A DNA stretch of 64,000 bases from Dendrobates tinctorius (GCF_039654945.1 NW_027361694.1:16244001-16308000), one strand, 5' to 3'; shown: positions 21,468-60,094, numbered from the stretch's first letter. Notes: generated from the sequence alone by a model not told the origin. Program-made: numbers and translations.

Positions 21468-21820
21468 AGGGAATCTGTCACCCTATTTTTCGCCTATCAG
21501 CTACCGGCATTCTGTTGAGGGCAGAGCAGAATACTGCAGTGCGCAGGCGCCGGTCCTCTCCCGGCACCTGTGCACTACAGGATTCTGCTCTGCCCTCAAC
21601 AGGGCAGATCAGTGCGCCTGCGCAGGAGCCACGACAGGCAGCAAAAAAGAGGACGTCACCGTTAGAAGATGGGAGGCGCCGGACGGGACACCCATGGGAC
21701 GGGACCGAACGCCTGGGTGAGTAACTCTTTTTTCTTATCTTTCAGGTACATCGGGGGCTCATCTACAGCATTACAGAATGCTGGCAGCTGATAGGTGAAA
21801 AATAGGGTGACAGATTACCT
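21468..21820. mobile_element. Kolobok/T2-type MITE
   Basis: TTAA on both sides; TIR AGGGAATCTGTCACCCTATTTTT / AAAAATAGGGTGACAGATTACCT. Confidence 0.85.
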
Positions 21821-22391
21821 TTAAAAGACATCCTGAGAAGACCAGCCCGTTACCCTATTAAATCCCCATAAAGTAATTGGCCTTTATTCCAGCATCAAGC
21901 AGCAAAGAAGAAAAAAAAAAACACTTTGTATCCAATGAAATTACGCATAATTACATGCTTGATGAAATTGTATTACCCTTGGAATAATTTGGTCTTGAAG
22001 CAGCAATGCCCATGGGAGTGCGGGCATATTATGGAGGAGAAAAAGCAGCCGGCCAGATCTTCCAGCTGCTTCAGACACTAATACCAGACAAATATCTGAA
22101 GTATCCCTTTTCTAGATTACAACCAGCAAATACTAAAACTGCACAAGCCCAGGTCAAAGGTTAGAATATGTTGTTTCTGGACTGCAGAAGCCAACCAGAA
22201 GGCAGTTGCTAAATTAGTGGCTGTGTCAGTAGGAATGGGCCCTGCCACATGTTGGCTTCATTCGCTATTCTAGAGAGGCCATGATAGTAAATGATGGTTG
22301 TCTATACAAAGCTGACACGAGAGAAACTGCTAATGCTACCTCATTCTAGTGATGGGAAACCCCATTTATGGGACATCTGTTGCATATCTAA

Positions 22392-22782
22392 GGGTACTGT
22401 CACACTTAGCGATGTACCAGCGATCCCGACCAGCGATATGACGTGGTCAGGATCGCTGGTGCATCGCTAAGTGGTCGCTAGTGAGCTGCCACACAGGCAG
22501 ATCTCACCAGCGACATTGCAGGGGTCGGGGGTCGCTACTTACCTGTCAGACGAGGCGATCCTGACATCCTCCCGCCCGCGTCCACGCGTCGCTCGTCTCC
22601 ACAGCAGGAAGCCCAACAGGAAGCTGACGACGAGAAATGGTCCAGGACGTTCTCGCGATCAGCGATAACCAGCGGGGGAGCGGTCGGAGGTAAGTATCAG
22701 ACATAGCGATATCGCTATAACGTCACAAAAACCAGTGACGTTATAGCGATATTGCTAGCATATCGCATAGTGTGACAGGCCC
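22392..22782. mobile_element. PIF/Harbinger-type MITE
   Basis: TAA-GGGTACTGTCACACT ... AGTGTGACAGGCCC-TTA; AGCGAT/ATCGCT subterminal repeats; related to 47456-48211. Confidence 0.8.
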
Positions 22783-23224
22783 TTAAGCGATGTGCCAACA
22801 GTCTGTCATAAGACAAAAATCCTCTGCTTGCCTACCCACAGTATGATTATTGAGCTGGAAAATGCATAGTTTCCACTAATTAGAACTATATGTTATAATA
22901 TTATTCATATTTTTGTAGAATTTACATGAAGATTCAAGGAACAGAAAATGCTCAAAATATTAGTTTGGTAGTAGGTGGAGTACAGGCTGTTAGAGGAGAG
23001 CACCGGTATATTGTATTTCATCAAGAGCCTTTAAAACAATGCATGTTCCACATACATATTTTCCACCCAAATCACTACATTTACACATCCTTTTCTGCTT
23101 TTAAATTCATCAAAAAAAGTCATCCTTTTCACATCTGCGATGCATCCATTGATTTTTCATCCTTTTTAAAAGCTGAAGGAGGTAAAACTGTCTGATCAAA
23201 ACATTTTTGTATCCAATGACTTAT

Positions 23225-23470
23225 CTATTTACTCAATGTCATTAATTCCGAAGGGCTTTACAGCCCTCATCACCACTGTTCCCACTGGGTCTCACAATCT
23301 AGATTCCCCATCAGTATGTCTTTGGAATGTGGGAGGAAACCGGAGAACCCCAAGGAAAACCACACAAACACAGGGAGAACATACAAACTCCTTGCAGATT
23401 TTGTCCTTGATAGGATGTGAACCCAGGACCCCAGCGCTACAAAGCAACAGTGCTAACCACTAAGCCATCA
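23225..23470 (-). mobile_element. tRNA-derived SINE (V-SINE-like)
   Basis: GTGGGAGGAAACCGGAG...GAGAACATACAAACTCC...GAACCCAGGACCCCAGCGCT...GTGCTAACCACT: reverse complement of A/B-box-like head and conserved core. Confidence 0.8.
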
Positions 23471-23803
23471 TGAACAATAGTAAAAACAATTGAATCATGT
23501 TTGGAAAACTAACGTAAAGGATTTTTAATTTTTCAGTCATTTTTAACAGCTTAAATGGCCAAATCTCATCGCTAAAAAAAAAGATCAGGACTGAACATGC
23601 TCTGATTCTAGGCATACTGATTTTTTTTGTTTTTTTTTTTTGCTTTTTGTGGTCGTGCCAAAGTTTACATTAAACTCTATGGGTCCATATACTGCTTGTT
23701 TAAAAAAAACAGTCTGCACATGTAAAAGTAAAATGGAGGTGAATATAGGTAAGCTAGATAAATATAATCAGGCCACAACTTCAAAACAAATTATAGTTAT
23801 AAC

Positions 23804-24320
23804 TAGAGATGAGTGGCTTGATTCATGGTGGGTCGAATGTGAGTCAAACTTCATGAAATTCATGGTTTTCAATTAAAAAAAAAAAAAAAAGTTGGTGGCA
23901 ACATTTCCGACATTGCTGAAGCATCAAAGAGCAGGCCAATGTCATTTTGCATGACTGAGTGGGCCACCCTTATACTGACATCTTGCAGATCATCAAACCT
24001 TGTACAATGGTGGTCAGTACCTGGGCCACAGAGCAGCGGTTCCCAGTAGAGCCCAGTTACTAGTCATTCTCCATTTGCAGAGTCACTGTGTAAGTCTCTC
24101 TTCTGTAGCGTGTAAGTTCTTATGATCAGTGGTGTCCTCTCACTTGTAGAGGTGGTAGTTGGGGTTGGCTCTCTCTCCTCTCCCACCACATGTATTTTCC
24201 AAACACTTAAATGTTTTCCAGTGTAGAGATTTGCGCAAATTTTTCGCCGCAAATGGAATTTTCTTTGGAAAATATGGCAAAGCCAGCAAATTCAAATCTC
24301 AAAATATCCACATATCTCTA
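23804..24320. mobile_element. hAT-type MITE
   Basis: TAGAGAT...ATCTCTA termini; 8-bp TSD GTTATAAC / GCTATAAC. Confidence 0.7.
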
Positions 24321-27290
24321 GCTATAACAACAAAACAGTTGCTAGAACTAGTGATTATCTATCAGCAAAGTATTTTTGAACAGCAGATCAACAGGCACTG
24401 GGGGGTGAGGTCCCTTTAATTACCAATCTCTAAAGTTACAGATCTACATTAGTAAAGAGAAGCCAGATAGAAAGAAGCTGTATTATGTTCTGGGACAGTC
24501 ACTCTCTAACTCAATACTGGATGCTTGTCTGCTGTGGGTTTGATCGGTGCAACTAGCGGGAGGCTTGCAAGCCACAAAAGGCCACAATGTAGCCAACTGA
24601 GTATTTCTGAATGGCCAGAAATTGGTGTGCCATGTACGCAGCAATATCATTGTCCCAAACTACTCACTTATGCAATAACCTATGTATCCATGAGCCAGTG
24701 CTTGCGTGGTGGGTTTCTCTGTTGCTTTAGTTTAACAGTATAGATTATTAATTTAAAAAAATGTAATAAAATAAAACATACAAGAGTGCTTGAAATGGCC
24801 AAATGCATTTACTAGGAAAAATGATCCTGTTTGCACAGCACGTCTTCTGCAGGATATTCTATTTAGCCTGCAAGAGACACCCAATTCATTAGCCCCAGAG
24901 AATAGGGTCTGCAGTACAGAAACAAGATCATTGACTGTAGAAAAGCAAGGCCCATCCAAGTGAGAGTGTCACAGAGCCATGAATGGGGGGATAGAGCCAG
25001 CTGGCTAATGTGCCTTCCTGACCACACTCAGCACTAACCCTGAACTGATTAAACACTTCCTGCAAGAAATTCTCACACATTGTGAATATATTGGTACTGT
25101 GTCAGAAAGTACATCTACAGAGTAGTATAGAAAAGCGCCATCATGAAAGAGAGAAACACACACAGATGGTAAAATAAACGTGATTTACAGGAAGTTTAAT
25201 AGCCTCAACCAAGAAACCCTAGCTAGAGTTCTGAAATGTATCCAGCCATAAAGTCCTATTAAACAAAATAGTAAAGGTCACATGTACAATAACATTTTCA
25301 TTAATAAGCAGGAATCATACCCAATCGCTACTGTCAAAAGTAAAAAAGCAGATCTATAGCGATATTAAATTATGGTGTGATGAGAGTATTTTTAGAGATC
25401 GCACAGGAAAGTATAATCTTCAGACACAAACATCTGTCTTATTTGAAGATTGATAGCGGGACACTAAAAATGTATATTCCATAAATCACTTATAAGATGT
25501 AACCAGCACATTCTTCTAGAATTTATTAAAAAAATTGACAAAACAATATAATTTTATGGTGAAAAATGTTTCCAGTACAAAAAAAGGACCCATCAATTAA
25601 GTCCAGTACCACAATTACATGTTGCTAGTTTCATGGCCGTTCTCAGTGACTAGCCCTTATTTTTATTCCTATGTTTCCGGCTCTTTTCACGCTGTTTTTT
25701 ACCCCTTCTGTTTAAAGCAAAACACTGGAAACGTGGAAATCTGTGATGGATTCTGTACAGAGGCATCAAAAAGCGATAGTAGTCCCACAGTTTAAAGGAG
25801 AAAAATACAGATACTATTTTGTTTGTAAATGCCACTTTATGAGAGCGAAACCTGATGCCATGTAAAAGTGGCGCAAAGGACAATTTGTACAATCTAGTTC
25901 ACCCTCTATTTGGCTCTTGATAATACTTGTCATGGAAAAGTCACTGCTGCGCAATGTGCTGTATCCAAACACACAAACACGAAGATGTCCCAGCCAGTTC
26001 AGGGATCATGAAATATCTGTCAAGTCTTTATTACAGCATAATTAAATATCGGTCTAATCCAAATAATAATTATAGCATTTTCCATTGGAAATACTAAATT
26101 GTTCAGACAGCAACATTATGGAAGTGCCATATTTCGAGTTAAATAGGCATGATGTTTTTATACAAATAATTTACAAGACTTGTATCCTTCGCAATGTTAA
26201 ACACTGACAGCACACACACACAGATCAGGGGTGGACATACCATAGCTGCCATCTGTGGGGCTGCACAGGGGCCCTAGAGGTAAAAGGACCCATTTCCACC
26301 CTTCAAAGCAGACGTAATTGTGCCTTATGATGAGCTATTGGGCTGCAAAGGGCCCATATATTGTTCTTGCACAGGGGCCCTTTTCTGTCTGTGTCCGCCA
26401 GAGGTATGCCACCTGTGTGCACTTTGTTTTTTTTTTTATGGACCCAAAGATTTGTAATAGGCACTCTTCATCCGTACAGCCGGAAAAAAAACGGACATGT
26501 CCCGGGGAGTTTTGTACAGAACCACAGATATGTTCACAGCCCCATAGACTATAATGAGTACATGTTGCATCTGGGAAAAAGACAGAATACGCACATCTGA
26601 ATGAGGCCTTAGTAAAATACACACCATAGATCACAAATTATATAGAACACTTTTGTCCAATTTGGCCATACATATATGTTCTAATAACCCATGGGTGCGC
26701 TCTAGTGATTTTGCAGGTGTACTTTAAATGTATCCCAATGGTATTTTGTCCATCAAGGGATTAAGGAACATCAGATGGCATAAAATATTCTTCAGCACTA
26801 TGAATAAAGAAAAATCTGGATGGCATAAAAGCTCAGAATTATGTATAAAAGGGAGAAATATTCTATTTCTTTTTCCTGTGGGAAATTAACAAGACACCAC
26901 AAAAAAGGAGCCAAGAGAGAGACAAAACTCAATGCTGAAACAGGGACCTTCCAGAGTTCCTACAATAATACATCACAGAACAGGCCGCTGCAGCAGATTA
27001 ACAGATGGATACAACCACTCAGGTCAACACTTCAAAAAGAATCCATAGTGAGTGATGAAAAGCTCATAAGTCACAAATCCTCACAAAATTACCACTTTTT
27101 AGAATGTTTAACTTATTCTGAATCTGTAAAGGATAAAAAAGGAAAAAAAAAAAAAACATCTGCGCATCTCATTTCTTAAGATCTTCTGACCTCCAATATC
27201 TATTCTTTGCAGGTCAGGTTAGCACTATGTGAAGCTGCTATTGGTTAACCCCTCAATGACCCAGACATTTTTTGTAGTTTTGCGTTGGGG

Positions 27291-27575
27291 AATGAGGAAT
27301 ACAGTGGTACAAAGTCCGCACTGCCCAAGGTTCCAAAACTGCGTCACACACGGAGGTGAAGCATGAGTGCGTTTGACAACGCATTTCAAGGTTTACAAAC
27401 CTCTTCATTAGGACGAAACCACAATAATAAGGTCTTATTATTTTGGCTTCGTCCTAATGAAGAGGTTTGTAAACCTTGAAACGCGTTGTCAAACCACACT
27501 CATGCTTCACCTCCGTGTGTGACACAGTTTTGGAACCTTGGGCAGCACGGACAGTGTGCCACCGTATTGCTCATT
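27291..27575. mobile_element. Penelope-derived inverted repeat with a hammerhead relic in each arm, inside a piggyBac-type fragment starting at 27249
   Basis: Arms of about 140 bp centred near 27432; plus arm has CTAATGA-AG-AGGTTT(gt)AAACCT-T-GAAA-CGCG-TT at 27454-27487. Confidence 0.7.
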
Positions 27576-27791
27576 CATTGCATCAAATATATTTTCACTT
27601 TTTTAATTTATTTTTTAAAGGGGAAAATGAGCATGATTTAAACTTTTACATTTTGTATTTCTTAAAACATTTTTGTTTATTTTTACTCTCTCAATGGGAC
27701 TTAAACTTGTACTGTTGTATTGCCATATGTAGTGCAATTGCAGTGCTCATATCAAGCCTAGTCTATGGCCGAGTTTCACAGGAGAACTTAA

Positions 27792-28816
27792 AGGGGTTGT
27801 CCGGGCTTTTCACATAATCTCAGTACATATCTGGGCTGCAGAATTATGACAATAAGTAATTTACTTTCTGTCACTAGTTTGCACGGTTTTCTAGATATTC
27901 TGAACAGAACGTCCAAGGGGGGGGGGGTGTTATGGCATTGAAATGAGAACTAGTCGTAACCTCCTACTCTACTCCAAACATGCCCTCTATAGCAACAACC
28001 CCACCCTCCATAGCTACAGGCCCTCCCCGTCTACATGAAGAAGCCTCATCACACAGTAACAAATCCTCCCCCTCTAGCAGCCTCACTGCAGAGAGCAGAC
28101 CACCCAGCTGCTCCTCCCCCAGACACACCCTGAACAGTGATCTATGGAAAGTGAAACTAGTGAGGAGGGAAAATCGTCCTGTATTCTGGGACAGGCTGTT
28201 CCCATCAGTATTTGTGTCATTAGAGACACAGTGCACACACATACACTGCACCAAATCTGCTGCTGTGTGAAGACATCAGTGACACAGAGCTGTCTCATTC
28301 ACACATCAGAGGCTTTGTCACACAACAGATTACATCAGTGACTACCATCCCCTATGCAGATTAGAAGCTGCAGACCCCCATCACTGGCCATCACAGTCTG
28401 TTCTCACTGCTGCCAGCAGCCTGGGACAGTGAGGGAAGGAATTACTGATAATGAGTTATGTATAGTCCTGTATTCTGGGCCACTCCATGATTACAATACA
28501 TAACTCATCAGTAATTCCTTCCCTCACTGTCCCAGGCTGCTACAGACACTGTCAGGTTGGCACCATTATACTGATTAACTGATTTCTTTTTTTAAGACAA
28601 TCAGAAGAACAGCAAACAAATTAATTATACACACAGTACATATGCAATCAGTCTGCAGCACAGGCGCAAACGCTGGCACCTGCCTGCAGAAGGTGTTTTT
28701 TTTCCCAAGATATATGTAATATTCATTATGCAAACTAGGGGCAGGTCACTGAGGGATCAGTGATCTGTCAGAAGCCATACTGTGTTACTGTGCACAATCC
28801 TGCTGACCGGTTCCCT
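27792..28816. mobile_element. Rearranged Kolobok/T2-type MITE sequence
   Basis: Begins TTAA-AGGGGTTGTCC and ends GTTCCCT-TTAA; internal inverted repeat at about 28416-28540; may be two fused elements. Confidence 0.5.
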
Positions 28817-29847
28817 TTAAAGAGGTTGTCCACTGCTATTTCATTGATGACCTATCCTTATCTAATACCTATTAGATGGCTGTCAGCTAAGTGATTGTTC
28901 GACCAGCAGCTGTCATGGCTGGTTCTCCCATATACATTCGGCTGAGCCCTCAAGTGTTCCAATTGAGAGAGCCATTGGCCGACATGTCTGGTGACGGCCT
29001 ACCTCCGGTAGAAAATACAATCGGCAGTCTGAAATCATATAGGCCAAATTGATATTTTCCCTGACAAATTGTTGGTATTGGTGGATTCAGCTGACATGAA
29101 TCTAATGTGTATGGTGGTGGGCTTATGATGGTAGTCACAATGGCCTTAAGCATTAAAATGACCTGTGTGCCCTTGAAAACGGAGCACACTCCATGTACCC
29201 CGCAGCAACCTGCAATGATAATGTACGCCACAGGCCGAGTGGATTTCTCGGCTCTCCTGACTCATGTTTGTGGTAGTAGACATTTGCTTTCACCATAAAC
29301 AACCATTCTATGATATTTTCTAACAGGTTTCACTGAATAAGTGTACAACTGCGATGAAGCAATTCCCCTTTGTCAATTAGGCATGTGTTTTCACAATCCT
29401 GACACGCCCTATTATAACCTATATTCTAACAGTCTTGGAGCATGCAGCTCGGGCAAGCCGCTGGCCTGTCATTCTCTATATACGTAACAGGGGCAAGCTT
29501 CAATAAGTAATATGTAAGTCATTTATTGATTGACGATGTTAAACAGTAACATACATGTATTTCTATAGGATTGAGTAATAGGTAACCAATATCTGCATCA
29601 TGCAGCATATATAGTAGGTTACACCAATTTTTGTTTTCTTGTATCCTCTATATAAATACTTTTTAATAATCTTTAAACTGTCTTTGTTTGTGATTAATAA
29701 GGCCTGCGTTTCGTGGTCCACCATTGTGTTACTCTGTTTGATAGCCACATTTTAAATAAAATTTTAGAGACTATAAACACTACATAGTATTCTGTGTTGT
29801 AGGCATAACAGGGGCAAGCTTTCAGGTGAGGGCAGGTAAGCCATCAA

Positions 29848-34748: not shown

Positions 34749-34858
34749 TTAAGGAACACTGGTAAGTTCAGGCCCCATGTCTCAAACTTTTCAAAATGAC
34801 TGGAGAAGTCTAATAGGCTCTAATACATCAAAGCGATTACGCTAAATTTCAGGTGTAA

Positions 34859-35579
34859 GGCTATGTGCACACGGTGCGGATTTTGCTGTGGAATTTTCCG
34901 TGTAGATTTTGCTAAATCTGCAGGTAAAATGACCTGCATTTTACCTGCAGTTTTAGTGCGGATTTCCCCTGCAGTTTTCACCTGCAGATTTCTATAATGG
35001 AGCAGGTGGAAAAATGCAGCAAAACCGCACAAAAGTAGTGACATGCTGCTTCTTTTATTCCGCACCAAATCTGCGCAGAAAAATCTGCAGCATGTGCACA
35101 GCGTTTTTTGTTTTACATAGCCTAAGGCTGTGTGCACACGCTGCGGATTTTGCTGCGGTTCCGCAGCGGATTTGGCCGCTGCGGACCTGCAGCAGTTTTT
35201 GCTGCGGTGTACAGTACCATGATTCCCTATGGGAATCAAAAACCGCAATGCAGACGGTGCGGATTTTTCCGCGCGGATTATCTGCGGTTTTCAATCCGCA
35301 GAAAGAATTGACATGTCAATTCTTTCTGCGGATTCTGCTGCGGTTTGCCATCTCCTCCATTGAGGAGATAAAAAAACGCAGGGCAAAACCGCAGAGCAAT
35401 ACGCAGGTAAAACCGCAGGTCTTTTGACCTGCGGATTTTACAAAATCCGCACGGATGAATCCGCACCTAAATCCGCAGCGTGTGCACACAGCCTTAAATG
35501 GTGCTTTACATCACGTGCAGTTCTGCAGGGCCAAATCTGCTGTAGAACTGCACAGAATCTGCACAGTGTGCACAGGGCC
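34859..35579. mobile_element. Harbinger-type MITE hosting a second MITE
   Basis: TAA-GGCTATGTGCACAC ... GTGTGCACAGGGCC-TAA. Confidence 0.75.
35126..35493. mobile_element. PIF/Harbinger-type MITE (same family as 9244-9586, inverted)
   Basis: TIR GGCTGTGTGCACACGCTGCGGATTT; flanks TAA/TTA. Confidence 0.85.
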
Positions 35580-40700: not shown

Positions 40701-41362
40701 TTAAGCAAAGTGCATCAAGATCAATTCCTTAACATGCAGGTTATTTCTTTTTCCACATTTTCAACAGATAATAAAAAACATAACATTAAATACAGCACAA
40801 GATAAAGGGGCTCTCCTTTACTTGTTTTATACTACAATCAAACCCATCGACATCTAAAAACAAACTAAACAAAAAACATATAATCACCTACCAGACCAAT
40901 GCTCTTCCCCTTTGGTCTCCTGGCTGCTGCTTCTAGTTAGGGATGTCACTTGATTGGCCGCAGCATTCACATTCTGTCCGAAACAGAAGAGATATTATTT
41001 CTTCTTATATGAACAGAATGTGAAGGCTGTAGACAATTAGTGTTGCTGACAGGCTGCAATGTTCATGTGGTGCCCCCTGCCAGAATAAACACCCAGGACA
41101 TCAATGGGGAACACAGGCAGTGGATTAACGTCAGTCTGGTAGGTAAGCATGTCTTATCTTTAATTTTTTCTTGTTTTACAAACATGTTAAGTGTGAAGAT
41201 ATCCATTAGTGAAAAGATCAGAGCAAACTTCCAGATATGCCTTAGATTAACCTACATTATGCCCAAAATGTGCAATTGCTGCAGGTTGTCACAAGATTAA
41301 AACTAACTGCTAAATCTATCCATACTGAACCAACTAAACCTTGTATTATAATTTCATTATTA

Positions 41363-43768: not shown

Positions 43769-44277
43769 CATATCCGCAACAACAAAGATGATCAAAAGGC
43801 ACTCTTATCAATATATAGAAAAGGATTTTATTGTTAGAAAAACATTTAAAATCATTACATATCACCAATTGAAGGGACAAGGGGAAATAGACATACACAT
43901 ATGTATAGTGTGATTACACACAAGAAAATGACGCAGATCCAGCACATAATAATAATAATCTTTATTTATATAGCGCCAACATATTCCGCAGCGCTTTACA
44001 GTTTAAAAACACAAGTCACATAGAGGATAGTACACACTGTGTGTCCATTAATTACATACAAAAAAATTTTAATGGACACACAGTGTGTACTATCCTCTGT
44101 GCTGGATTTGTGCGTCATTATCTTGTTTGTAATCACACTATACATATGTGTATGTCTATTTCCCCTTGTCCCTTCAATTGGTGATATCTAATGATTTTAA
44201 ATGTTTTTCTAACAATAAAATTATTTTCTATATATTGATAAGAGTGCCTTTTGATCATCTTTGCTGTTGCGGAAATA
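43769..44277. repeat. Long AT-rich inverted repeat with a short LINE/SINE tail inserted in the left arm (about 43947-44022)
   Basis: Arms of about 205 bp around a spacer of about 18 bp; the insert AATAATAATCTTTATTTATATAGCGCCAACATATTCCGCAGCGCTTTACA is absent from the right arm. Confidence 0.8.
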
Positions 44278-44419
44278 TTGCTGGAGGATGTAGGACTGGG
44301 GGTCAAACTCTACAACTGAAGGACAAAAAGCCAATTGGAATTAGACTGTTCATATTAGTGTCATGGCTTCTTTTATAAAGTCATTACATACAGCACTGCC
44401 AAATCCATTATCAAACTTA

Positions 44420-45246
44420 CCGTATATACTCGAGTATAAGCCGACCAGAGTATAAGCCGAGGCCCCTAATTTTGCCACGAAAAACTGGGTAAGCTTATTG
44501 ACGCGAGTATAAACCGGGTATGCATTGTCCCGTCATCCCTGTCCTGCTCTGTGTGGCTCTCCCCCCTCCCAGTATGCATGACTCGGCTCCTTTTCCAACC
44601 TCATGCTCCCCCGTCCTCCTCCATGCTCCTCAGTGCACCGCCGTCCTCCTCAGTGCTCCCCCATCCTGCTCCGTGCTCCTCTGTGCTCCCCCATCCTGCT
44701 CTGTCCTCCCCGTCCTGCTCCATGCTCCTTCGTCCTCAGTGCTCCCCGTCTTGCTCCGTGCTCCTCTGTGCTCCCCCGTCCTGCTCCATGCTCCCTATCC
44801 TGCTCTGTGCTCCCCACGTCCTGCTCCGTGCTCCCGTATCCTACTCCGTCATACTTACCCTCCTGTACAATCGCTGAACGTCCCCTGCATCCTCCGTTGT
44901 CCCGGCTTCCTGCAGCTCTCCTGTGCTGAGCAGTCACGTGGTACTGCTCATTAAGGTCTTGAATATGGACGCCATGCCTATGGGAGTGAGGAGTTGTGTC
45001 CATATTTGTGACCTTAATGAGCGGTACGATGTGACCGCTCAACACAGGAAGAAGCTGCCAGCCCTGGGACAACGGAGGATGCAGCGGACGTTCAGCGATT
45101 ATACAGGAGGGCGAGTATGATGTCCCAGCCACCGCTCCCCCTCCCCCGCTGGTTTCTGCACAATGACTCGTGTATTGGCCGAGGAGAGGGCATTTTCAGC
45201 ACAAAAAATGTGCTGAAAATCTCGGCTTATACACGAGTATATATGG
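44420..45246. mobile_element. Tc1/mariner-superfamily (pogo/Tigger-like) MITE
   Basis: TA flanks; TIR CCGTATATACTCGAGTATAAGCCGA; C/T-rich minisatellite and a palindromic core. Confidence 0.85.
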
Positions 45247-45319
45247 TATACCAAGAAACTTTTCCTGACTTCAATGTGATAAATCTTGGATTGGGCATTT
45301 TCCTGTGCAGACAATGTCA

Positions 45320-46000
45320 TTCTGTATTGGGTGGTCTGCCACTGAGGTCATGAATGCCGAACAATGTATTGTCTACCGGGTGCCCTGGTTCAGTCAGTAT
45401 ATTGCAGACAGATTGCTGACTGGGGAAGACCCAGCGGTTTTATACAAATTGGTACCAATGACAAAGTCAGAGGGAGATGGAAGGTATTTACAATTTTTTT
45501 CAGGGAACTAGGAGAGAAGCTGAAGTCCAGGACCTCCAAGGTGGTGTTTTCAGAAATATTGCCGATGGCATGAGCGATACTAGAAAGACAGCAGGAGCTT
45601 ATGGAGATAAATTAGTAGCTTCGAAATTGATGAAGGACGGAAGGGTTTGAGTTCATAGAGAATTGTGTACTGTTGGATAGAGGTTTCACATTACAGACTG
45701 GATGCACCTCAATGGGTGGTTCGATGGCTGAAAGAGCTTTTAAAATAAGATCTGGGTTGAGGAATGGTGTTTGTGCAAAAACGGGGACACAGCAGACAGA
45801 AAGAAGGAGACAGTAGGGGTCTATGAGGAATTATGAGGAAAAGTGATGTGCAAGGAAAGTAGAAAGGTGATTCGGAGTAATAAATGTGATAATACTATTA
45901 AATGTCTGCTGGTGAACACTTAAGTCTTACAAACAAAATGCATGATTTGGAGACTAACGTCATATACAGATTATGACGTGGTGGGAATTATATAAACCTG
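45320..46000 (+). pseudogene. CR1-like LINE relic (ORF1 SGNH-esterase region, probable start of ORF2)
   Basis: CLPGA, GEDPAV, IGTNDKVRGRW and ELGEKLKSRTSKVVFSEILP fragments. Confidence 0.75.
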
Positions 46001-46681
46001 GAAGGATAAAAAAACGTAAATCTGGCGTTCTTACTTTTTTTTTCGCTATGCCGTTTACCAATCGGATTAATTCTTTTTATAGCTGGATAGATCAGGAGAT
46101 TCCGAATGCGGCAATACCAAATATGTGTATATTTTATATTTTATTGTTTTATTTTGAATGGGGCAAATAGGGGCAATTTGAACTTGTTTGAACTTTTTAA
46201 AATATTTTTAAAGATTTTTTTTTTTACTCTTTGCACGCTTCAATAGTCTCCATGTGAGTCTAGAAGCTGCAGTTGTCAAATTGCCTCTGTTACACACAGT
46301 TGATGCTCAGATCGCCTGTGTGTTGCAGAAATGCTGACTTGCTATGAGCGCCGACAACCAAGCTGGCTATGAAAACCACAGACGTCTGCTGGAGACCTCT
46401 GGTTGTCATGCCGACCCATAGGTGACCCGCGATCATGTGATGGGTACACCAATAGGTGGGATTAGTGACGAACTTCCGACGCGATCACATTAAATGCCGC
46501 TGTCAGATTGACAGCGGCATTTAACGGGTTAACAGACGTGGGTGGATCGCGATTCCACCCACAGCTGTTGCAAGCACATGTCCGCTGTTCTAAACAGCGG
46601 ACATGTGCGGGAAAAGGTGTGCGCTCAGCGCCGGAGCACACATCAAAGGGAGGGACACGACATGCGCATGTCGTGAAGGGT
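46000..46681. mobile_element. Right part of a piggyBac-type MITE (related to 29848-30873)
   Basis: Ends CATGTCGTGAAGGGT-TTAA; collinear with 30390-30873. Confidence 0.7.
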
Positions 46682-46689
46682 TTAAATTA

Positions 46690-47191
46690 GTATGTAAACA
46701 AATGTTGAATTGCCTGTGGTAAATCACAAATGAGAATCACCTGTGATTGTCAGTGTCCATGTGACATGAATTAGCCAATGAATGATGACTTCAGAAGCCA
46801 CATGGTAGGCCCTGCTGCTTTGTCACATTGGTGAAGACAAACGCGCTATGAGGACATCTGAACTGCAAACACAAGACTTCCAAAAGGTATAAGGCCATCA
46901 CCAAAGACCCAAGTCTCCCAGTTTAAACAGTGTGTAATGTTAAGAAGTTTGCCATGTATGGAATTGTCAAGAACCTTCCTGGACGTGGGGGAAATAGGAA
47001 ACTTGACAAGAGATGTTGGTGCAAAAGGTGGGGAAAATTCCACGTCAAACATCCAAAGACCTGAAGGCCATCCTAGAACAGTCAGGGGTCATGGTTTCAA
47101 TAAGTACCATAAACCGCACACTAAACCAAGCAGAGCTTTATGGGCCAAGGAAGAAACCACTGCTGAAGAAAAGATATAAAAAGGAACGACT
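46690..47191 (+). pseudogene. 5' half of a Tc1 transposase relic, truncated by the L1 start
   Basis: KGYKAITKD, KNLPGRG and PRKKPLLKKRYKKERL fragments, similar to the Tc1 at 58461-60094. Confidence 0.75.
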
Positions 47192-47455
47192 GGGGGCATG
47201 GCCTGGCAATGGCTCCAAGTGGATGTGTTCACTAAAGCTCCTACTTTGCCCGGCTATTCAAGGACCATGGACAAAGCTAAATGCTGCAAAAAATAGCTCT
47301 AGGACATCAGGCATCGAGTAGCAGCAAAGGAGAGGTGAGGAGGATGAGCAGCTGTGTATTTGCGGTGATGGGGAAGCCTGTGAGAGGAGAGAGAAGAGGG
47401 CCATGTGTCTTCAAGCTTGCAGCAGAGCAAGATCCCTTCTGCTGAAACTGTCTTA

Positions 47456-48211
47456 GGGCCCCGTCACACATAGTGACCCACCAGCGATCCCAACAACGAT
47501 ATGCTTCAGGATCGCTGGTGAGTCGCTACATGATCGCTGGTGAGCTGTCAAACAGGCAGCTTCACCAGCGATCAGGACCAGCGACGCCGAGCGTGCGGCG
47601 TCACTGTGTACTTTAGTTATCAGAGCGTGCGGCGTCGCTGTGTACTTTAGTTACCAGCGCGCTGATGCAGGGAGCTGGTAACTAAGGTACTCATCGGGTT
47701 TCTAAGGGGCGTGCGTCACTTAGAAACCCGATGTGTACCTTGGTTACCAGCTCCCTGCATCAGCGCGCTGGTAACTAAAGTATACAGCGACGCGCTGATG
47801 CAGGGAGCTGGTAACCAAGGTACACATCGGGTTTCTAAGTGACGCACGCCCCTTAGACACCCGATGTGTACCTTAGTTACCAGCTCCCTGCATCAGCGAG
47901 CTGGTAACTAAGGTACACATCGGGTTTCTAGGTGCTGCGCGCCTCTTAGAAACCCTGCGTTTACCCTAGTTACCAGCTCCTGCTCTCGGGTCTCCCGCCT
48001 GTCACACGCAGCAATGCGTGCTGGCCAGCGGGAGACCAGCGACCCCAAAAATGTCCAGAGGTTTCTACAGCGATCAGCGATACCTGGCAGGGGGGCCGGT
48101 CGCTGACAGCTGTCACACACAGCGATCTCGCTGGTGAGATCGCTGTTGCGTCACAAAACTTGTGACTCAGCAGCAATCTCGCTAGCGATCTCGCTGTGTG
48201 TGATGGGGGCT
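47456..48211. mobile_element. PIF/Harbinger-type MITE with internal palindromic repeats
   Basis: TTA on both sides; GGGCCCCGTCACACA / TGTGTGATGGGGGCT. Confidence 0.8.
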
Positions 48212-48317
48212 TTAGTCCCCTTGGGACAGATATACTGCAGCGTATGGTGTGGAGAAAAGCAGGTAGGGAACTGCGTGTCTGTGCTTCAGCTCCCGGTGAC
48301 TCCTAAAGACACTGTGA

Positions 48318-48691
48318 GGCTGTGTGCCCATGTTGCGTTTTTGTAAGCGTTTCCGCAGCGTTTGAGCCGGATTAGACGCTGCAGAAACGCTTAAAAGAAG
48401 CCTCCCATTAAATTTAATGCATTTTTGGCTTTTTGTGCCAATGCATGCGTTTTTAACCGCTCAGAAAACGCTTAGTGGCTAAAAAAAACCAGCATGCTCA
48501 TTAATTTCAGCATAGCTCAGCGTTTTTAGCCATTTCCAATGTTCCCAGAAATCGCGTGGAAAAAAACGCATCAAAAACGCGTGTTTTTTTGTGCAAAAAC
48601 GCGCAAAAAACGCGCGGAAATAAAATGCGTGGTTTCTGGGAAGGAGTCTGGTTTTCTGAGCGTTTAAAAACGCTAATGTGGGCACATAGCA
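48318..48691. mobile_element. PIF/Harbinger-type MITE
   Basis: TGA-GGCTGTGTGCCCA ... TGGGCACATAGCA-TTA; AAAACGC repeats. Confidence 0.75.
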
Positions 48692-49284
48692 TTAGGCTTC
48701 TCAGTCTGAAAGACTAGTGTGTATGGGATATGGGCAGGAAATGCAGGAAGCCCTCCTCCTCCACATCATTAACCCCAGCTTCTTTCAAATCAGGCAGCAT
48801 CCAAAGATACTTACTTAACAGACAAGCCAGGCTCTGCCCCTGATCAAGATTCTAAAATGGTGTCTGATGCTCCCTCTCGCACAGCCTCCCATTCTTCACA
48901 AGAGGATATCTCCAGAGAAAATATGCAAGAAGACGTAGGAAGGAGAGAAACCCACTCCAACACCTCTTTTATACCTTCACCAAGCTCTGCTAATGCCTTT
49001 GTGACACCATCTCAGAATCTGGCACTGATGATGGAAGAAATCAAAGATCTCCGTTATCAAATGGGGAATATTCTTACCAAAACAGATATGGAAGGTTATA
49101 GTACCCACTTGGAAAATCTGCGCAAGTCTGAGATACAAGGCCTGAATGCGTCAATCTCACAATTCGCCAATAGAGTGACCCAGTAGGAATCTTTCTCTGC
49201 CACAGCTGCCGAAGAACAAAAGGTGCAAGTCAAATAATATACCTCCATTCTACACAGATTGACTCATTATTTGGTATGATAGAG

Positions 49285-50885
49285 CAGGGGTCCCCAACCA
49301 CCGGTCCGCGGCCCAGCACCGGGCTGTTGCAGTGCCCTTGCCGGTCCGCGGACACAAGGGGAGCCAGCGGCGGTGCAGCAGTTGATACTCACCTAGCGGT
49401 CCCTGTCGGCGTGGCGGCTTCATCCAGCACTGAGCAGTCAAGTGTACCGCTCATTTAAGGTCATGAATATGGACGCCACTCATCTCCCATAGGCGTGGCG
49501 TCCATATTCATAGACCTTAATGAGCGGTAGCATGTGACCGCTCCGCACAGGAGCTGAAGCGCCGCGAGATGCAGGGAGGGAAGTTCAGCGACGGGAAGGA
49601 AGTTCAGAGATGTGAGGGTAAGTATGATGGGGGAGGATGGGGGAACCGAGCGGAGCCATATATACAAGGGAGGGAGAGTGGGAGCGGAGCCATATATACA
49701 AGGGAGGGAGAGTGGGAGCGGAGCCATATATACAAGGGAGGGAGAGTGGGAGCGGAGCCATAAATACATGGGAGGGAGAGTGGGAGCGGAGCCATAAATA
49801 CATGGGAGGGAGAGTGGGAGCGGAGCCATATATATAAGGGAGGGAGAGTGGGAGCGGAGCCATAAATACATGGGAGGGAGAGTGGGAGCGGAGCCATATA
49901 TATAAGGGAGGGAGAGTGGGAGCGGAGCCATAAATATATGGGAGGGAGAGTGGGAGCGGAGCCATATTTACAAGGGAAGGAGAGTGGGAGCGGAGCCATA
50001 TATATAAGGAAGGGAGAGTGGGAGCGGAGTCATATATACAAGGGAGGGAGAGTGGGAGCAGAGCCATATATATAAGGGAGGGAGCGTGGGAGCGGAGCCC
50101 TAAATACATGGGAGGGAGAGTGGGAGCGGAGCCATATATATATATATAAGGGAGGGAGAGTGGGAGCGGAGCCATAAATACATGGGAGGGAGAGTGGGAG
50201 CAGAGCCATATATATAAGGGAGGGAGAGTGGGATTGGAGCCATAAATACAAGGGAGGGAGAGTGGGAGCGGAGCCACATATATAAGGGAGGGAGAGTGGG
50301 AGCGGAGCCATAAATACAAGGGAAGGAGAGTGGAAGTAGAGCCATGTATACAGGATGGGAGAGTGGGAGCAGAGCCATGTATACAGGATGGGAGGGTGGG
50401 AGCGGAGCCATGTATACAAGGATGGGAGGATGGGAGCAGAGCCATGTATACAAGGATGGGACAGGGGAGCCATGCATACAACAGGGGGAGCCACACAGAG
50501 CTGGACAGGACGGGGGGAACCACACATACATTTTCTGATGATTAGAAAATAATCAGCATGTACAGAACTCCAGTACAATTTTTCTTAAGTGCTAAATGCT
50601 CCATTTCCTTGTAGGTTCCAATCATCATTAGCAGTGACGGTCATCAGTAGAAGTAGCCCAGTGCTCCCACTGAAACAAAGAAACAAGCCAGGTGCTCCCA
50701 CTCATTCAAAACCTATGGTGAGTTGAGTCACATTATAAATGTTATAATTAAATGATAAGTATGCACTGCTAAACTACAACTGCGTCCATAGCCCCTGTCA
50801 CACCTCCATCCCCACCCTGCCGGGCCATGGAAGAATGGTCTTGCTTGAAGCCGGTCCCTGGTGCAAAAAAGGTTGGGGACCACGG
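49285..50885. mobile_element. hAT (Charlie-like) MITE
   Basis: Perfect 8-bp TSD TGATAGAG (49277-49284, 50886-50893); CAGGGGTCCCCAACC / GGTTGGGGACCACGG termini. Confidence 0.92.
49648..50480 (+). repeat. G-rich minisatellite of about 34 bp
   Basis: Unit GGGAGGGAGAGTGGGAGCGGAGCCATATATACAA, about 20 copies plus a degenerate tail. Confidence 0.95.
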
Positions 50886-53800
50886 TGATAGAGGACCTCG
50901 AGAATCGAAACCGCCGCAATAATATTCGCATACAGGGTTTACCTGAAGCAACTGGCACAGCCGATCTTATTCCCATCCTTTGCGGCATCTTAAACACGCT
51001 CTTAGAAAGGCCACCTACCAAAGAAATACTTATTCACTGAGCACACCGAGCTTTAAGGCCCCGCAACAATGACTCAGGCATTCCCAGAGATGTAATTTTC
51101 TGAGTTCATTATTTCAAACCAAAGAAGAAATTATGTGAAAGACTCAGTCCAAAGCACCGATGGATTTTGATGGGACCCATTTACATTTTATGGCGGACTT
51201 AGGTCAACCTTAGCAAAACGTAGGGCTCTGCGCCCGCTGTTGGAGGTTCTCAGAGAAAGAAATGTCCCCTACGCGTGGGGTTTTCCCTTCCAATTACAAA
51301 TGTGCAACCAGCATGAAACTTTCTTTCTGAGAAACCCACATGGATTGCGGTCATTCCTAGAGGACCTGGATTTGCCAGATATTACTATCTCTGATTGGCC
51401 CACAAACCCATTGAGTCCTTCGGACTCCTATATGAATCGTCGACAAGTACAACAATTCCAAAGACCCAAAAGACGACCATTCTCATCTAGTTGAACATTG
51501 ATATCTCTGGTTGTTTCTGTTTCATTCTAGGAGATTCAATGAAAGCTTGTCTATAGAATTTTAAGTATCACTCACCAAGTTCCTTTTTTTAGTGTTTATA
51601 TTGTGAATTTAGGTGTAACTGGACCTGTTAGAATCATAAAACACTTTATTTTATATAATGTGATCCGTATTGTGGATATCCGAGGGTGATGTCATTCGAT
51701 CTATCTTGCCTTTGAAGGAGATTCTACTGAGCCCTTAGACTAATAATGTAGATAAAAATATGTGATCTACATCGTTTGTATGTGAGAAGATTTATGAACA
51801 TACAAGTAGATACCTGTATTAAGTATGATAGACTAACACAACTTTCAGAAACACCTAACGGTCTTGAATGAACACTGGGATATGTTCTACTAGGGTTAAT
51901 TACTGCATTTTCCTTTCCTTACAGGTTATGCATCTTTAACCCCTTTACCCCCAAGGGTGGTTTGCACGTTCATGACCGGGCCAATTTTTACAATTCTGAC
52001 CACTGTCCCTTTAGGAGGTAAAACTCTGAAACGCTTCACTGGATCCCACTGATTCTGACAGTGTTTTCTCGTGACATATTGTACTTCATGTTAGTGGTAA
52101 AATTTCATTCATATAACTTGCGTTTATTTGTGAAAAAAACGGAAATTTGGCGAAAATTTAAAAAATTTCGCAATTTTCCAACTTTGAATTTTTATGCCCT
52201 TAAATCATAGAGATATGGCACACAAAAAAATTAATAAGTAACATTTCACATATGTTTTCTTTACATCAGCACAATTTTGGAACCAAAATTTTTTTTTTGT
52301 TAGGAAGTTATAAGGGTTAAAAGTTGACCAGCGATTTCTCATTTTTGCAACCCTATTTTATTTTTAGGGACCACATCACATTTGAAGTCACTTTGAGGGG
52401 TCTATTTGATAGAAAATACACAAAAGTGAAACCATTCTAAAAACTGCACCCCTCAAGATGCTCAAAACCAGATTCAAGACGTTTATTAACCCTTCAGATG
52501 CTTCACAGGAATTTTTTGAATGTTTAAAAAAAATGAACATTTAACTTTTTTTCACAAAAAAAGTACTTCAGGTCCAATTTTTTTTATTTTACCAAGGGTA
52601 ACAGGAGAAATTGGACTGCAAAAGTTATTGTCCAATTTGTCCTGAGCACGCTGATACCTGATATGTGGGGGGGGAACCACTGTTTCTGCGCATGGCAGAG
52701 CCCAGAAGGGAAGGAGCGCCATTTGACTTTTTTAATGCAAAATTGGCTGGAATTCAGATCGGACGCCATGTCACGTTTGATGTGCCTAAACAGTGGAAAC
52801 CCCCCACAAGTGACCCCATTTTGGAAACTAGACCCCCCCAAGGAACATATCTAGATATGTGGTGAGAACTTTGAACCCACAATGGCTTCACAGAAGTTTA
52901 TAACGTACAGCCGTACAATTAAAAAATCATATTTTTTCCACAAAAATGATCTTTTCACCCCCAATTTTTATTTTCCCAAGGGTAACAGGACCCTAAAAGT
53001 TATTGTGCAATTTGTCCTAAGTATGCTGATACCCCATATGTGGGTGTAAACGACTATTTGGGTGCATGGCAGAGTTCGGAAGGGAAGCAGCGCCATTTGA
53101 CTTTTTTGGCTGGAATTGAGATCGGACGCCATGTCGCGTTTGGAAAGCCCCTGATGTACCAAAACAGTGGAAACCCCCCCCACAAATGACACCATTTTGG
53201 AAACTAGACCCCCCCAAGGAACTTATCTAGATGTGTGGTGAGATCAGACGCCAAACGTTGTGTTTGGAGAGCACCTGATGTGCCTAAACAGTGGAAACCC
53301 CCCAATTCTAACTCCAACCCTAACCCCAACACACCCCTAACCCTAATCTCAGCCCTAGCCCTAACCCTAATGGGAAAATGGAAATACTTTTTTTTTTTAA
53401 ATTTTATTATTTTTCCCTAACTAAGGGGGTGATAAAGGGGGATTTGATTTACTATATATGGCGGTTTTTTACGTTTGGCAGCTGTCATACGCTAAAAGAC
53501 GCTTTTTATTGTAAAAATAGTTTTTGCATCACCACATTTTGAGAGCTATAATTTTTCCATTACCCACCGAGTCATGTGAGGTCTTATTTTTTGCGGGACG
53601 AGTTGACGTTTTTATTGGTACCATTTTTGGGCACGTGACATTTTTTGATCATTTTTTATTCAGATTTTTGGGACACAGAATGAACAAAAACCAGCATTAC
53701 ATGAATTTCTTTTGGGGGGTGCGTTTACACCGTTCCGCGTGCGGTAAAATTGATAAAGTGGTTTTATTTTTTTCATCGGGTCAGTACGGATACTGCGATA

Positions 53801-54125
53801 CCTCATTGATGTTGTTTTTTTATATTTTGGCGGTTTTATGCAATGAAAACAATTTTAAATAAAAAATTATTATTTTTGCATCGCTTTATTCAGGGCTGTG
53901 GAGTCAGAGTCGGAATCGTGGAGTCGGAGGTTGGAGCTCATTTTGGTGGAGTCGGAATAAAATGGACCGACTCCTAAAACATATAATAAATTGGGCACAG
54001 TAGTTCAATGCAGAATGTGCTGAGTATTCATAGGAATTTGGGAAAGTTATGAAATGTCCTATAAATGGCTGATCTATTCCTAATCTAAGGCTACATTCAC
54101 ACAAGAACAGGTTCTTGCTATTGTA

Positions 54126-55357
54126 ATGGACAATGCTTCAAACATGATAAGTACAATTAAACTGATGAATGAGAGTAATAAACAACAGCTAGAAGAAAAT
54201 TTAGGATTCAGTATGTTTGAGATGGAAGGCCACAGTGCTGTTCATGTAACTGAGGAACAAACAGATATTACAACAGAAGAACAGCAAAATTATACTGTAG
54301 AAATAGATGATCTTGTTAAAGCTGCTTCAAAACACTTTCCTGTTCATCACGTGCGCTGTGCTGTGCACACGCTGCAGCTGGCAATAAGAGATAGTCTGCA
54401 AGAGGGACATGCTGGAAATCTGATTGGAAAAGTGAGGAAATTGGTTATTGCCACCAGAACTCCTAAAATTGATTCCATCTTGAAGAGACGTGCTGGGAAA
54501 GGGGCAATTGTAGATCAAGCCACTCGGTGGGGCAGCACTTATTTAATGATAGAGCGATTGCTTGAACTAAAACTGTTTCTTATAGATAATGCGAACCCTC
54601 AGGTAACCATAAATATAGGTCAATGGACACAGGTGGCTGAATTGAAGGAATTGCTTAATCACCCATTTACAGTGACTAAAAAATTACAAGCTGAGGATTT
54701 AAGGGAGTGGAAGAACTTGCTATTTTGCCTGTCCCAAAGAGGAACTTTAATCGCAGATGGCATTGCTGCTTCAATGAAACGGAGAGAGACACAGCTATTG
54801 GAAAATAACATTTTTCTGGTAGCTGTTTATGTGGATCCAAGTCATCGTATACTGCTTGATGATCAACAGCTTACTAAAGGAAAGAAGCTCTGACTGAGGT
54901 AGTAGTTATGATAAGTGGCCTACAGGAGGACTGCCAGGCGCAAGAGGACTTGGGTCCTGACAGTGCTACTGCTGCCATATCTTCATCCTCATCAGATGAG
55001 GCGTTTGACTTTGACAAGTATTTGGATGACATGCAGCAGGCAAAGCGTTACAGCAAGGAAAAAGATTTCACTCAGTCTCCTATAGCAAGCAGACTGACCA
55101 TATTTCAGCAAAATGTTTCACTTGCTCTCAAAGAAATAGAAAAATTCAACCGTTCATTAAAACTGACTGTGCACGAGGCAATTCCTTTATACCCAGAAAT
55201 TGTTAGAGATGTTGCCCATGTGGTTACGGCTTTGCCTCCAACCCAAATTAGTGTAGAGAGGCTGTTCTCTAGCCTTAAAATTATTAGGTCAGATTTGAGG
55301 TCATCTATGAAGGAGGATCTGATGGAGGCAATTCTATTTCTTAGAACAAATTCATAG
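54126..55357 (+). pseudogene. hAT transposase, N-terminally deleted, frameshift near 54880
   Basis: DNASNM, RCAVHTLQL (CxxH), TRWGSTYLMIERL and the C-terminal dimerisation motif PPTQISVERLFS. Confidence 0.9.
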
Positions 55358-55578
55358 ACTGCACAAATGTTATTTAGTATGTTTTTGTTGAAAACTGTTT
55401 TTTGCCACTTACATAGTTTACTACATAGCGTATATATATATATATATACACACATACAATATATATATATATACATACACACACAGTATATGTAATCGAT
55501 ATTACATAGTGTATTACATATTTACAATTTATTACAGTTTTTTGTGTTCTAAAGTTGTATTCCAATAAATATATATTA

Positions 55579-56601
55579 CCGTATTTTTCGGACTATAAGA
55601 CGCACCGGACCATAAGACGCACCCCAATTTTCACAAGGAAAATAGGGGAAAATGTGTCAAATGGGGGTCCGTCTTACAGTCCGAATTCATCTTACCTGGG
55701 AAGGGATCCGGCACAGGTGGAGAAGTAGTCACAGGGGTCATTCAGTGGTCCAGGCTCGTGCGGTGGCGGCTCTGTGCTGGGGCAGCTGCGCTGGGGTAGG
55801 GGCAGCTGTGCTGGGGTAGGGGCAGCTGTGCTGGGGCAGCTGTGCTGGGGTAGGTGCAGCTGTGCTAGGGTAGGGGCAGCTGTGCTGGGGTAGGTGCAGC
55901 TGTGCTGGGGCAGCTGTGCTGGGGCAGGGGCTGCTGTGCTGGGGTAGGGGCTGCTGTGCTGGGGCAGGGGCAGCTGTGCTGGGGCAGGGGCAGCTGTGCG
56001 GTGGTGGCAGCGGGCGGCGCTCTGCGGTGCGGTGGTGGCAGCGGGCTGTGCTCCGGTGCAGGGGCGGCGGCTCTGCCGGCATTTCTTCGCAGCCCGGAGG
56101 CCCCCCGCACATGCCTTGCTGGCCGCCGCCATGTTGCGGTGGCCTCCGGGAGCATGGACGCCGGGAAGATGGCCGCCGGTCCGGGGACGGCGCATGCGCG
56201 GCTTAAGATCTCGTCCCGAGATCTCGGGGAACGAGATTCAAATCTCGGCAACGAGATCTCGTCCCCCGAAATCTCGGGACGAGATCTTAAGCCGCGCATG
56301 CGCCGTCCCCGGACCGGCGGCCATCTTCCCGGCGTCCATGCTCCCAGGGGCCACCGCAACATGGCGGCGGCCAGCAAGGGATGTGCGGGGGGCCTGCGGG
56401 CTGCGAAGAAATGCCGGCGGAGCCGCCGCCCCTGCACCAGAGCACAGCCCGCTGCCACCACCGCACCGCAGAGCGCCGCCCGCTGCCACCAGCGCACCAG
56501 CCAGAGGGTTAGTACCGTGTATTGCGACCATAAGACGCACCCCCCACTTTCCCCCAAAATTTTTGGGGAAAAAAGTGCGTCTTATGGTCGGAAAAATACG
56601 G
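55579..56601. mobile_element. pogo/Tigger-like MITE with GC-rich palindrome
   Basis: TA flanks; TIR CCGTATTTTTC(G/C)GAC(T/C)ATAAGACGCAC; the empty site is visible in the hAT copy at 5741-5775. Confidence 0.92.

Positions 56602-58460: not shown

Positions 58461-60094
<1,634 letters not shown>

Follow-up and report, generated by a model that had tools for sequence, protein, structure and literature searches.

Outward-facing U1-complementary motifs bracket CpG-rich cores in non-autonomous DNA transposons of dendrobatid frogs

Introduction

A 64,000-nt window of Dendrobates tinctorius DNA (one strand; by the window we mean this whole stretch, and positions count from its first letter) raises the question of why non-coding DNA transposons of different kinds should carry, in their interior, a CpG-rich core with what look like 5' splice sites (donors) on either side, facing away from it. 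A preliminary description of the window had proposed that miniature transposable elements with inverted repeats (MITEs) of four superfamilies share such a promoter-like core, and that they had either converged on it or exchanged it. We find in the window copies of an internal module that recurs among non-autonomous DNA transposons of dendrobatid frogs. The module consists of a 150-250-bp CpG-rich, usually palindromic core, each side of which ends in RGGTRAGTAT, the complement of the 5' end of U1 small nuclear RNA (snRNA), pointing away from the core; beyond the motif there is usually a T-rich tract, often a minisatellite, and the backbones belong to different superfamilies. The CpG-rich core bracketed by outward U1-complementary motifs is a real, orientation-biased architecture that recurs across types of terminal inverted repeat (TIR) and target-site duplication (TSD). 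As to what it does, we lean towards a portable bidirectional promoter-like cassette with U1-engaged ends, a reading in which both transcription and splicing are inferred and to which we give slightly less than an even chance.

The window is transposon-packed vertebrate DNA, with a GC content of 0.43 and a CpG observed/expected ratio (o/e) of 0.55. It contains the remains of the reverse transcriptase and endonuclease of a long interspersed nuclear element (LINE), a hAT transposase remnant, a Tc1 element and about twenty palindromic MITE-like elements. The nearest named relatives of the window's Tc1 protein are found in Ranitomeya, 89-93% identical over the aligned part, and at the DNA level the element and its Ranitomeya copies share 87-100% identity (mostly 93-98%). 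The carriers of the module have TIRs together with the TSD typical of their superfamily and have no coding capacity, as befits non-autonomous DNA transposons or MITEs.

Materials and methods

The primary data were the window itself. For comparison we used 288 kb of sequence, namely nine Ranitomeya loci and one short Logan contig (L numbers below), retrieved with Tc1 proteins as handles; pooled tests on the window and Ranitomeya covered 352 kb. Donors were scored with a position weight matrix (PWM, in bits) and by the match of 11-mers to the U1 complement, with a threshold of at least 9/11. Chance expectations in the window came from local first-order Markov simulations, and in the orientation tests the same sequences in the opposite orientation (inward as against outward) served as their own control.

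Results

In related frog DNA the outward-donor layout clearly departs from randomness. The 352 kb contain 140 CpG-rich segments, of which 16 had an outward site of at least 9/11 on both sides and none had inward sites on both; counted per side, there were 43 outward sites and 12 inward. Opposite-strand pairs lying 60-450 bp apart were divergent in 28 cases and convergent in 4. Because copies within one lineage are not independent of one another, it is safer to count lineages, of which there are nine against none. The divergent pairs come from at least nine BLAST-distinct GC- and CpG-rich lineages, and the convergent ones enclose AT-rich, CpG-poor DNA. At island-like DNA, 29 donor-like 9-mers pointed outward and 9 inward. 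These 29 outward sites also differ from others in their surroundings: AT at +7/+8, which extends the match to U1, follows 20 of them as compared with 20 of 165 sites elsewhere (Fisher test, 6e-10), and the T content downstream is 0.45 versus 0.29. The outward bias for which the preliminary description had suggested a test became clear once the 288 kb of related frog DNA was added.

One module occurs in two different backbones within the window. The first TA-flanked element and the hAT element (Table 1) carry modules, at 44849-45120 and 49385-49628 respectively, that are homologous at ~73% identity, including GGGTAAGTATGATGG, and both have a related minisatellite on one side, which in the hAT element is a 34-bp repeat following the module at 49648-50470. 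The former module has a GC content of 0.54 and a CpG o/e of 0.71, the latter 0.56 and 0.93, and Ranitomeya also holds a copy of this lineage, with CAGGTGAGTAT on both arms. Since the two modules are homologous, they count as one lineage in two backbones and as exchange, not convergence; that one module should be truly common to a TA-flanked element and a hAT element with an 8-bp TSD points to exchange as its probable history. Of the two routes offered in the preliminary description, exchange is therefore retained and convergence is not. A nested MITE with a TA duplication was considered and rejected for the window copies, the TA beside the Ranitomeya module being absent there.

The donor pair of the TA-flanked element represents a single event mirrored by its 272-bp palindrome, at whose right end (45109-45117) the mirrored copy has decayed and now reads GGGCGAGT (GGCGAGT, with GC instead of GT). 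Only two clean divergent pairs exist in the window, 49387(-)/49615(+) in the hAT element and 22537(-)/22687(+) in the first Harbinger-type copy. Palindromic mirroring as the sole cause of donor pairs was rejected: the left site of the hAT element is placed by alignment ~25-30 bp to the inside of the palindrome's end, and the Harbinger-type pair does not lie in mirrored arms.

Ranitomeya contributes further module families. One consists of ~200-250-bp palindromes bounded by TATACTCACC ... GGTGAGTATA, with a centre made up of a cAMP response element (CRE), an E-box and a second CRE; another is nested in Harbinger copies (nine copies); and there are several further single examples. Four copies of the CRE/E-box family give eight arms with a mean identity of 0.70; the two donor motifs are their only fully invariant 10-column blocks, while the central block scores ~0.9 and the spacer from centre to donor ~0.45, with large indels. 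In the lineage of the window module, followed in two genomes, the centre is likewise kept and strong donors stand in five of six arms, the spacer being unalignable.

We also observed that a minisatellite begins just outside one donor motif in six composite elements, the sites including 44599-44849, 49648-50470 and 55772-55999 in the window and L002:6400-6620 and L002:14920-15330 in Ranitomeya; the repeat units are unrelated between families.

The CpG-island-like composition attributed to the cores was borne out, with GC of 0.54-0.72 and CpG o/e of 0.7-1.2 as against 0.55 for the whole window, and we judged the cores, short as they are (145-500 bp), to have island composition (GC at least 0.55, CpG o/e at least 0.6). 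The transcription-factor-like motifs named in the preliminary description fared less evenly. Consensus sites for NRF1 and for extended YY1 are indeed enriched, but they are confined to two elements as mirrored copies: GCGCATGCGC occurs in the window only as a mirrored pair in the 55996-56497 palindrome, an NRF1-like variant has two additional sites in the T2-type MITE, and the extended YY1 site amounts to one mirrored pair. CCAAT is depleted in the window, CRE half-sites are not enriched and no full CRE was found there; the Ranitomeya modules have conserved CRE and E-box centres.

The Harbinger-type family keeps its termini and swaps its interior, as seen in the window (22376-22787 versus 47438-48215) and in the copies of L002, L004, L005, L007 and L010; the interiors encountered are a short CpG core, tandem palindromes, and tandem palindromes with a nested donor-flanked module. 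Four Ranitomeya copies also have its termini; their interiors are different, and no donor stands at the corresponding position. The interior of copy 1 is a 145-bp CpG-rich core (GC 0.63, CpG o/e 1.23), its 22537 motif lies in interior sequence not common to the other Harbinger-type copies, and this interior has no similarity to the module lineage of the TA-flanked and hAT elements. In copy 2 the GGTGAG(T) motifs at 47515 and 47537 point inward and are part of a repeated subterminal motif.

The second TA-flanked element, whose TIRs, like those of the first, read CCGTAT..., encloses a 502-bp palindrome at 55996-56497 (93.6%, GC 0.72, CpG o/e 0.97) with mirrored GCGCATGCGC and AANATGGCGGC motifs. 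The palindrome has no similarity to the TA-flanked/hAT module lineage, and a protein-word search with the open reading frame (ORF) across it, the only ORF searched, found no host or transposase homologue. The supposed right-hand variant donor at 56506 reads GGTTAGT and scores 5.4 bits.

In the T2-type MITE two GCGCMKGCGC sites are followed, in order, by AAGATGG, an ATG, a donor and a T-rich stretch; the donor and its T-rich/AG cassette are kept in Ranitomeya copies and occur on both sides in one palindromic relative. We considered whether the module-bearing elements are left-end deletion derivatives of an autonomous parent and rejected this idea, which predicts inward donors and fits only the single-donor T2-type element. 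As a separate observation, the succession of donor, 29-36 nt of T-rich sequence and CAG/GT makes up a mini intron-like cassette (window 21714-21745; L003:25320-25491; L010:30537-30997), of which one T2-type copy bears a CTAAC branch-like motif; 29-36 nt is too short for a vertebrate intron. CpG depletion (o/e 0.22-0.45) was seen in the T2-like and unassigned examples, those at 18440, 40895 and 4565.

Taken site by site, the motifs listed in the preliminary description at 22537, 22687, 49387, 49615, 44853, 55690, 4558, 21716 and 41141 are present, but those at 45109 (GC), 56506 (GTTAGT) and 18440/18672 (no GT) are not donors. Its claim that the pattern spans superfamilies stands to the extent that different TIR/TSD types carry the architecture; it has to be narrowed in that the Harbinger-type donors belong to one copy only, the second TA-flanked element has one fair site, and most palindromic MITEs lack donors. 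We accordingly rejected a general property of MITEs as an explanation, most palindromic MITE-like elements having no strong donor.

No U1 snRNA gene or pseudogene was detected, in that no Rfam family, the hammerhead among them, reached its gathering score in the window and there was no U1 match at E<1 in 46300-57000; another RNA family as an explanation was likewise rejected, the window's Rfam matches being only sub-threshold and of the hairpin-type microRNA (miRNA) kind. A scan of public metagenome contigs with the core pattern gave no further copies.

Two Ranitomeya imitator gene models pass through module donors. In the first, a Tc1-fusion, a 63-nt exon (L002:14817-14879) ends exactly at the module donor, and in the second, a DCAF12-like model, the coding start ATG lies in the module (L003:1288), 48 nt upstream of the donor at 1336.

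Table 1. Module-bearing and related elements of the window, with their outward sites
Feature	Position	Strand	Description
T2-type MITE	21464-21824		TTAAAGGRR terminus (TTAAAGGGA)
Single donor of T2-type MITE	21714-21722	+	TGGGTGAGT; followed by a 29-nt T-rich stretch ending CAG/GT at 21745
Harbinger-type MITE, copy 1	22393-22785		TIRs GGGTACTGTCACAC / GTGTGACAGGCCC; TAA/TTA flanks
Outward 5' splice-site motif	22537-22545	-	Top strand ACTTACCTG, minus strand CAGGTAAGT; 12.6 bits; 10/11 to U1 complement
Outward motif	22687-22697	+	GAGGTAAGTAT; 10/11 to U1 complement; donor reads GAGGTAAGT
Relative of a Ranitomeya module family	40880-41150		CpG-depleted (o/e 0.22); eroded outward sites TAGGTGATTAT (minus) and TAGGTAAGCAT (plus)
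TA-flanked non-autonomous element (Tc1/mariner or pogo-like)	44418-45248		TIR, minisatellite 44599-44849, 272-bp palindromic module 44849-45120, TIR
Outward motif, left module end	44853-44861	-	ACTTACC on top strand; AGGGTAAGT(AT)
Harbinger-type MITE, copy 2	47438-48215		Termini as copy 1; interior of tandem palindromes; no outward donors
Non-autonomous hAT element	49285-50885		8-bp TSD TGATAGAG at 49277-49284 and 50886-50893; termini CAGGGGTCCCCAACC / GGTTGGGGACCACGG
Outward motif	49387-49395	-	Top strand ACTCACCTA, minus strand TAGGTGAGT(AT); 10/11 to U1 complement
Outward motif	49615-49625	+	AGGGTAAGTAT (donor AGGGTAAGT); homologous to the 44853 site, GGGTAAGTATGATGG common to both
Second TA-flanked element	55580-56603		TIR, minisatellite 55772-55999, 502-bp palindrome 55996-56497
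Outward site, sole fair one in second TA-flanked element	55690-55698	-	Top strand TCTTACCTG, minus strand CAGGTAAGA

Elsewhere in the window, a 373-bp satellite (9708-13330; 9.5 copies, ~90% identity) is immediately preceded by ~18 TTAGGG repeats (9587-9695), so that 9587-13330 forms an interstitial telomere-like tract beside a satellite array, and a 458-bp palindrome at 57797-58254 is 99.6% self-complementary and has no spacer.

Discussion

If the module is a promoter-like cassette, its core would be a small bidirectional RNA polymerase II promoter, and the two flanking 5' splice-site motifs would each bind the U1 small nuclear ribonucleoprotein (snRNP) on the respective nascent transcript. 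Such engagement would let outward transcription escape early termination in both directions, and the transcripts might then run on beyond the element and be joined by splicing to acceptors downstream, the element supplying first exons. We rest this reading on the orientation bias, the +7/+8 extension and T-rich tail, the invariance of the donor motif and the island-like composition of the cores, with the two R. imitator gene models as indirect hints of use. It is known that an upstream antisense arm without a U1-engaged 5' splice site is terminated early, U1 suppressing premature polyadenylation, and that arms of this kind are targets of Restrictor and of decay linked to the polyadenylation signal (PAS) (PMC13465009). 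A bolder proposal, which we consider possible but doubtful, is that dendrobatid frogs harbour a selected portable cassette, a bidirectional promoter with each arm closed by a U1-engaged first-exon end, that is moved between unrelated DNA-transposon backbones by recombination and spreads through the genome on them. At every landing site it would give rise to fresh transcription units and provide host genes with alternative first exons.

Known systems resemble the frog module in part. Vertebrate bidirectional CpG-island promoters, as the U1-PAS axis describes them (Almada et al. 2013 and Ntini et al. 2013, in the form in which PMC13465009 cites them), likewise have a CpG-rich core and a 5' splice site ~80-130 nt from the centre, and the ubiquitous-factor-like motifs of their cores may be a further common trait. 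U1 engagement decides there whether an arm is productively elongated, as it may in the frog module. Host promoters normally have the U1 site on the sense arm only, whereas the frog modules have it on both; the frog module is, moreover, short, palindromic, multi-copy and situated inside transposons.

Retroelements provide a second parallel, since long terminal repeat (LTR) promoters with the major splice donor of the leader, and the antisense promoter of L1 with internal donors, donate first exons. In these, as in the frog modules with their putative promoter, a promoter is closely followed by a strong donor able to join host exons, and in retroviruses U1 at the leader donor also silences a nearby poly(A) site. 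Retroelements are autonomous, however, have one-directional or unequal arms and use them for their own expression, whereas the frog modules ride on DNA transposons that are non-coding and have their donors placed symmetrically, facing outward. The P element, whose pseudo-5' splice sites recruit U1 to regulate IVS3 splicing, is a DNA transposon that uses a U1-binding donor-like sequence other than as a real donor; unlike the frog modules, it does so within the coding transcript of an autonomous element, at a single locus type and with no promoter-like core.

Transposons of the Ds/dSpm type are reportedly spliced out of host transcripts, as Wessler's work on Ds is said to have established. In the frog modules the donors point away from a core inside the element, an arrangement that does not allow them to remove the element by splicing. 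Introners, in the summary that PMC10901741 gives in citing Huff et al. 2016, and Ds/dSpm elements resemble the frog modules as DNA transposons with selected consensus splice signals, but their signals point inward from the termini and the element is removed as an intron. No layout of terminal, inward splice signals was found here, all the strong sites being internal and facing outward from the core. MITEs of the hAT, Harbinger and Kolobok types are liver enhancers in Xenopus, where Kolobok MITEs near promoters correlate with higher expression (PMC12676858). These share with the frog carriers their superfamilies, palindromic interiors and regulatory potential, although the Xenopus MITE studies (PMC12676858, PMC6004289) make no mention of splice-donor motifs or of a promoter/first-exon architecture. 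In the literature on transposon chimeric RNAs and U1 function (reviews) and on Xenopus MITEs we found no description of this layout.

A number of our results weigh against the cassette reading. Within the window, enrichment over simulated controls, of the kind for which the preliminary description had called, proved marginal: there are 25 PWM donors of at least 10 bits where simulation gives 18.8 (P 0.10), 2 divergent pairs where it gives 0.43 (P 0.07) and 27 U1 11-mer matches of at least 9/11 as compared with 19 (P 0.03), the window-only donor tests overall giving P of about 0.03-0.3. Among 48 palindromic elements, 30 have a best outward score above their best inward one (P 0.11); strong sites on the two arms together were seen in only 4. 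To this must be added the dependence among copies mentioned above. The Harbinger-type donors are private to a single copy, since the position homologous to 22687 is not a donor in four other family copies and within a 14-nt patch copy 1 departs from the family state at ~6 positions, of which 3 belong to the donor 9-mer. Nor do the cores appear to be kept unmethylated, as had been suggested: in nine Harbinger copies with one module, CpG decay in the core (0.140 per CpG) equals that in the backbone (0.107-0.108; Fisher P 0.34) and so lends no support to protection from germline methylation, with a weak contrary hint in the arms of the 502-bp palindrome, where only 3-4 CpG-type changes were seen among the 31 CpGs per arm. 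The Tc1 element (58459-60096, 214-bp TIRs) is also cautionary. It has two perfect CAGGTAAGT motifs antisense to the transposase (59288, 59821), both kept by all Ranitomeya copies; one falls inside the coding sequence, in codons for KTYL, and the second lies immediately upstream of the ORF. A transposon family can thus keep perfect donor 9-mers, one of them in codons, and conservation of this sort need not mean splicing. As for the R. imitator gene models, annotation by MAKER from transcript alignments has been described for this frog (preprint 10.1101/706671; journal version flagged retracted), and the models at this accession may not be transcript-based.

Among other explanations, the one that survives best, though we think it unlikely, is that the motif is a DNA-level cis element, or the junction of a separately mobile or recombining module (a terminal repeat or hairpin boundary), its likeness to a donor being incidental. 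This would account for the position of the invariant 10-mer, right at the edge of the module where a variable spacer meets variable flanks, and for the joining of one module to a number of flank types and backbones, which nested insertion or template switching would produce; selection in non-autonomous lineages also usually keeps what transposition needs. However, there is no TSD around the module, conservation extends over only 8-10 bp with variable 'TIR' sequence next to it, and BLAST-unrelated lineages have in common only the U1-complementary 8-9-mer, the outward orientation and the T-rich tail.

Alternatively, the U1 sites might serve host tolerance, or telescripting: in elements that are mostly intronic they could suppress the elements' own A-rich or AATAAA stretches or cryptic exons, so that less harmful copies persist. 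There is a retroviral precedent in the major splice donor that silences the 5' LTR poly(A) site, and one Ranitomeya family has AATAAA on the entry side and a U1 site with a T-rich tract on the exit side, in either orientation. We nonetheless regard this as rather improbable: the window modules have no A-rich or AATAAA entry side, a palindromic element in read-through RNA would pair the donor with its own complement, and the conserved CRE/E-box/ETS-like centre would be left unexplained. That U1 suppresses premature polyadenylation is itself established (PMC13465009).

It is less probable still, in our estimation, that the module is passive and now functionless, either a captured and palindromised host promoter with first exon and intron start or the leftover 5' end of a parent transposon. 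The 'exon' part is the least conserved and the donor invariant, which is unexpected for passive cargo; inverted duplication of an autonomous left end would yield inward donors; and the ORF of the 502-bp palindrome (the only ORF searched) yielded neither a host nor a transposase homologue. What speaks for such an origin is the layout, in which TF-like motifs (those resembling transcription-factor sites) and an ATG in good context precede a donor and a T-rich stretch sometimes ending in AG, and the fact that inverted duplication of such a fragment automatically yields outward donors. Chance, in the form of composition-expected heptamers doubled by palindromy, multiplied by family copies and picked post hoc, is the least credible account, for although the window-only tests gave P 0.03-0.3, ~1.4 of roughly 40 palindromic families would be expected to have a 9.5-bit site per orientation (an estimate from simulated density) and several sites first listed are not donors, the outward/inward asymmetry is self-controlled (16 vs 0, 43 vs 12, 29 vs 9), the +7/+8 extension and T-rich tail are specific to these sites, and the motif is invariant beside a spacer of 45% identity.

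Promoter-donating transposons with first exons are known for LTR elements and L1, and our literature searches returned no such description for miniature DNA transposons, nor of a donor symmetric on both arms. Should the modules prove inactive, the invariant U1-complementary 10-mer would still call for another explanation. If they are active, they would set a practical trap for gene annotation, two R. imitator models already passing through such sites, and, with both arms armed, they would put the U1-PAS rule of promoter directionality to a natural test. Active modules would also offer giant amphibian genomes a mechanism for scattering promoters and first exons on a massive scale.

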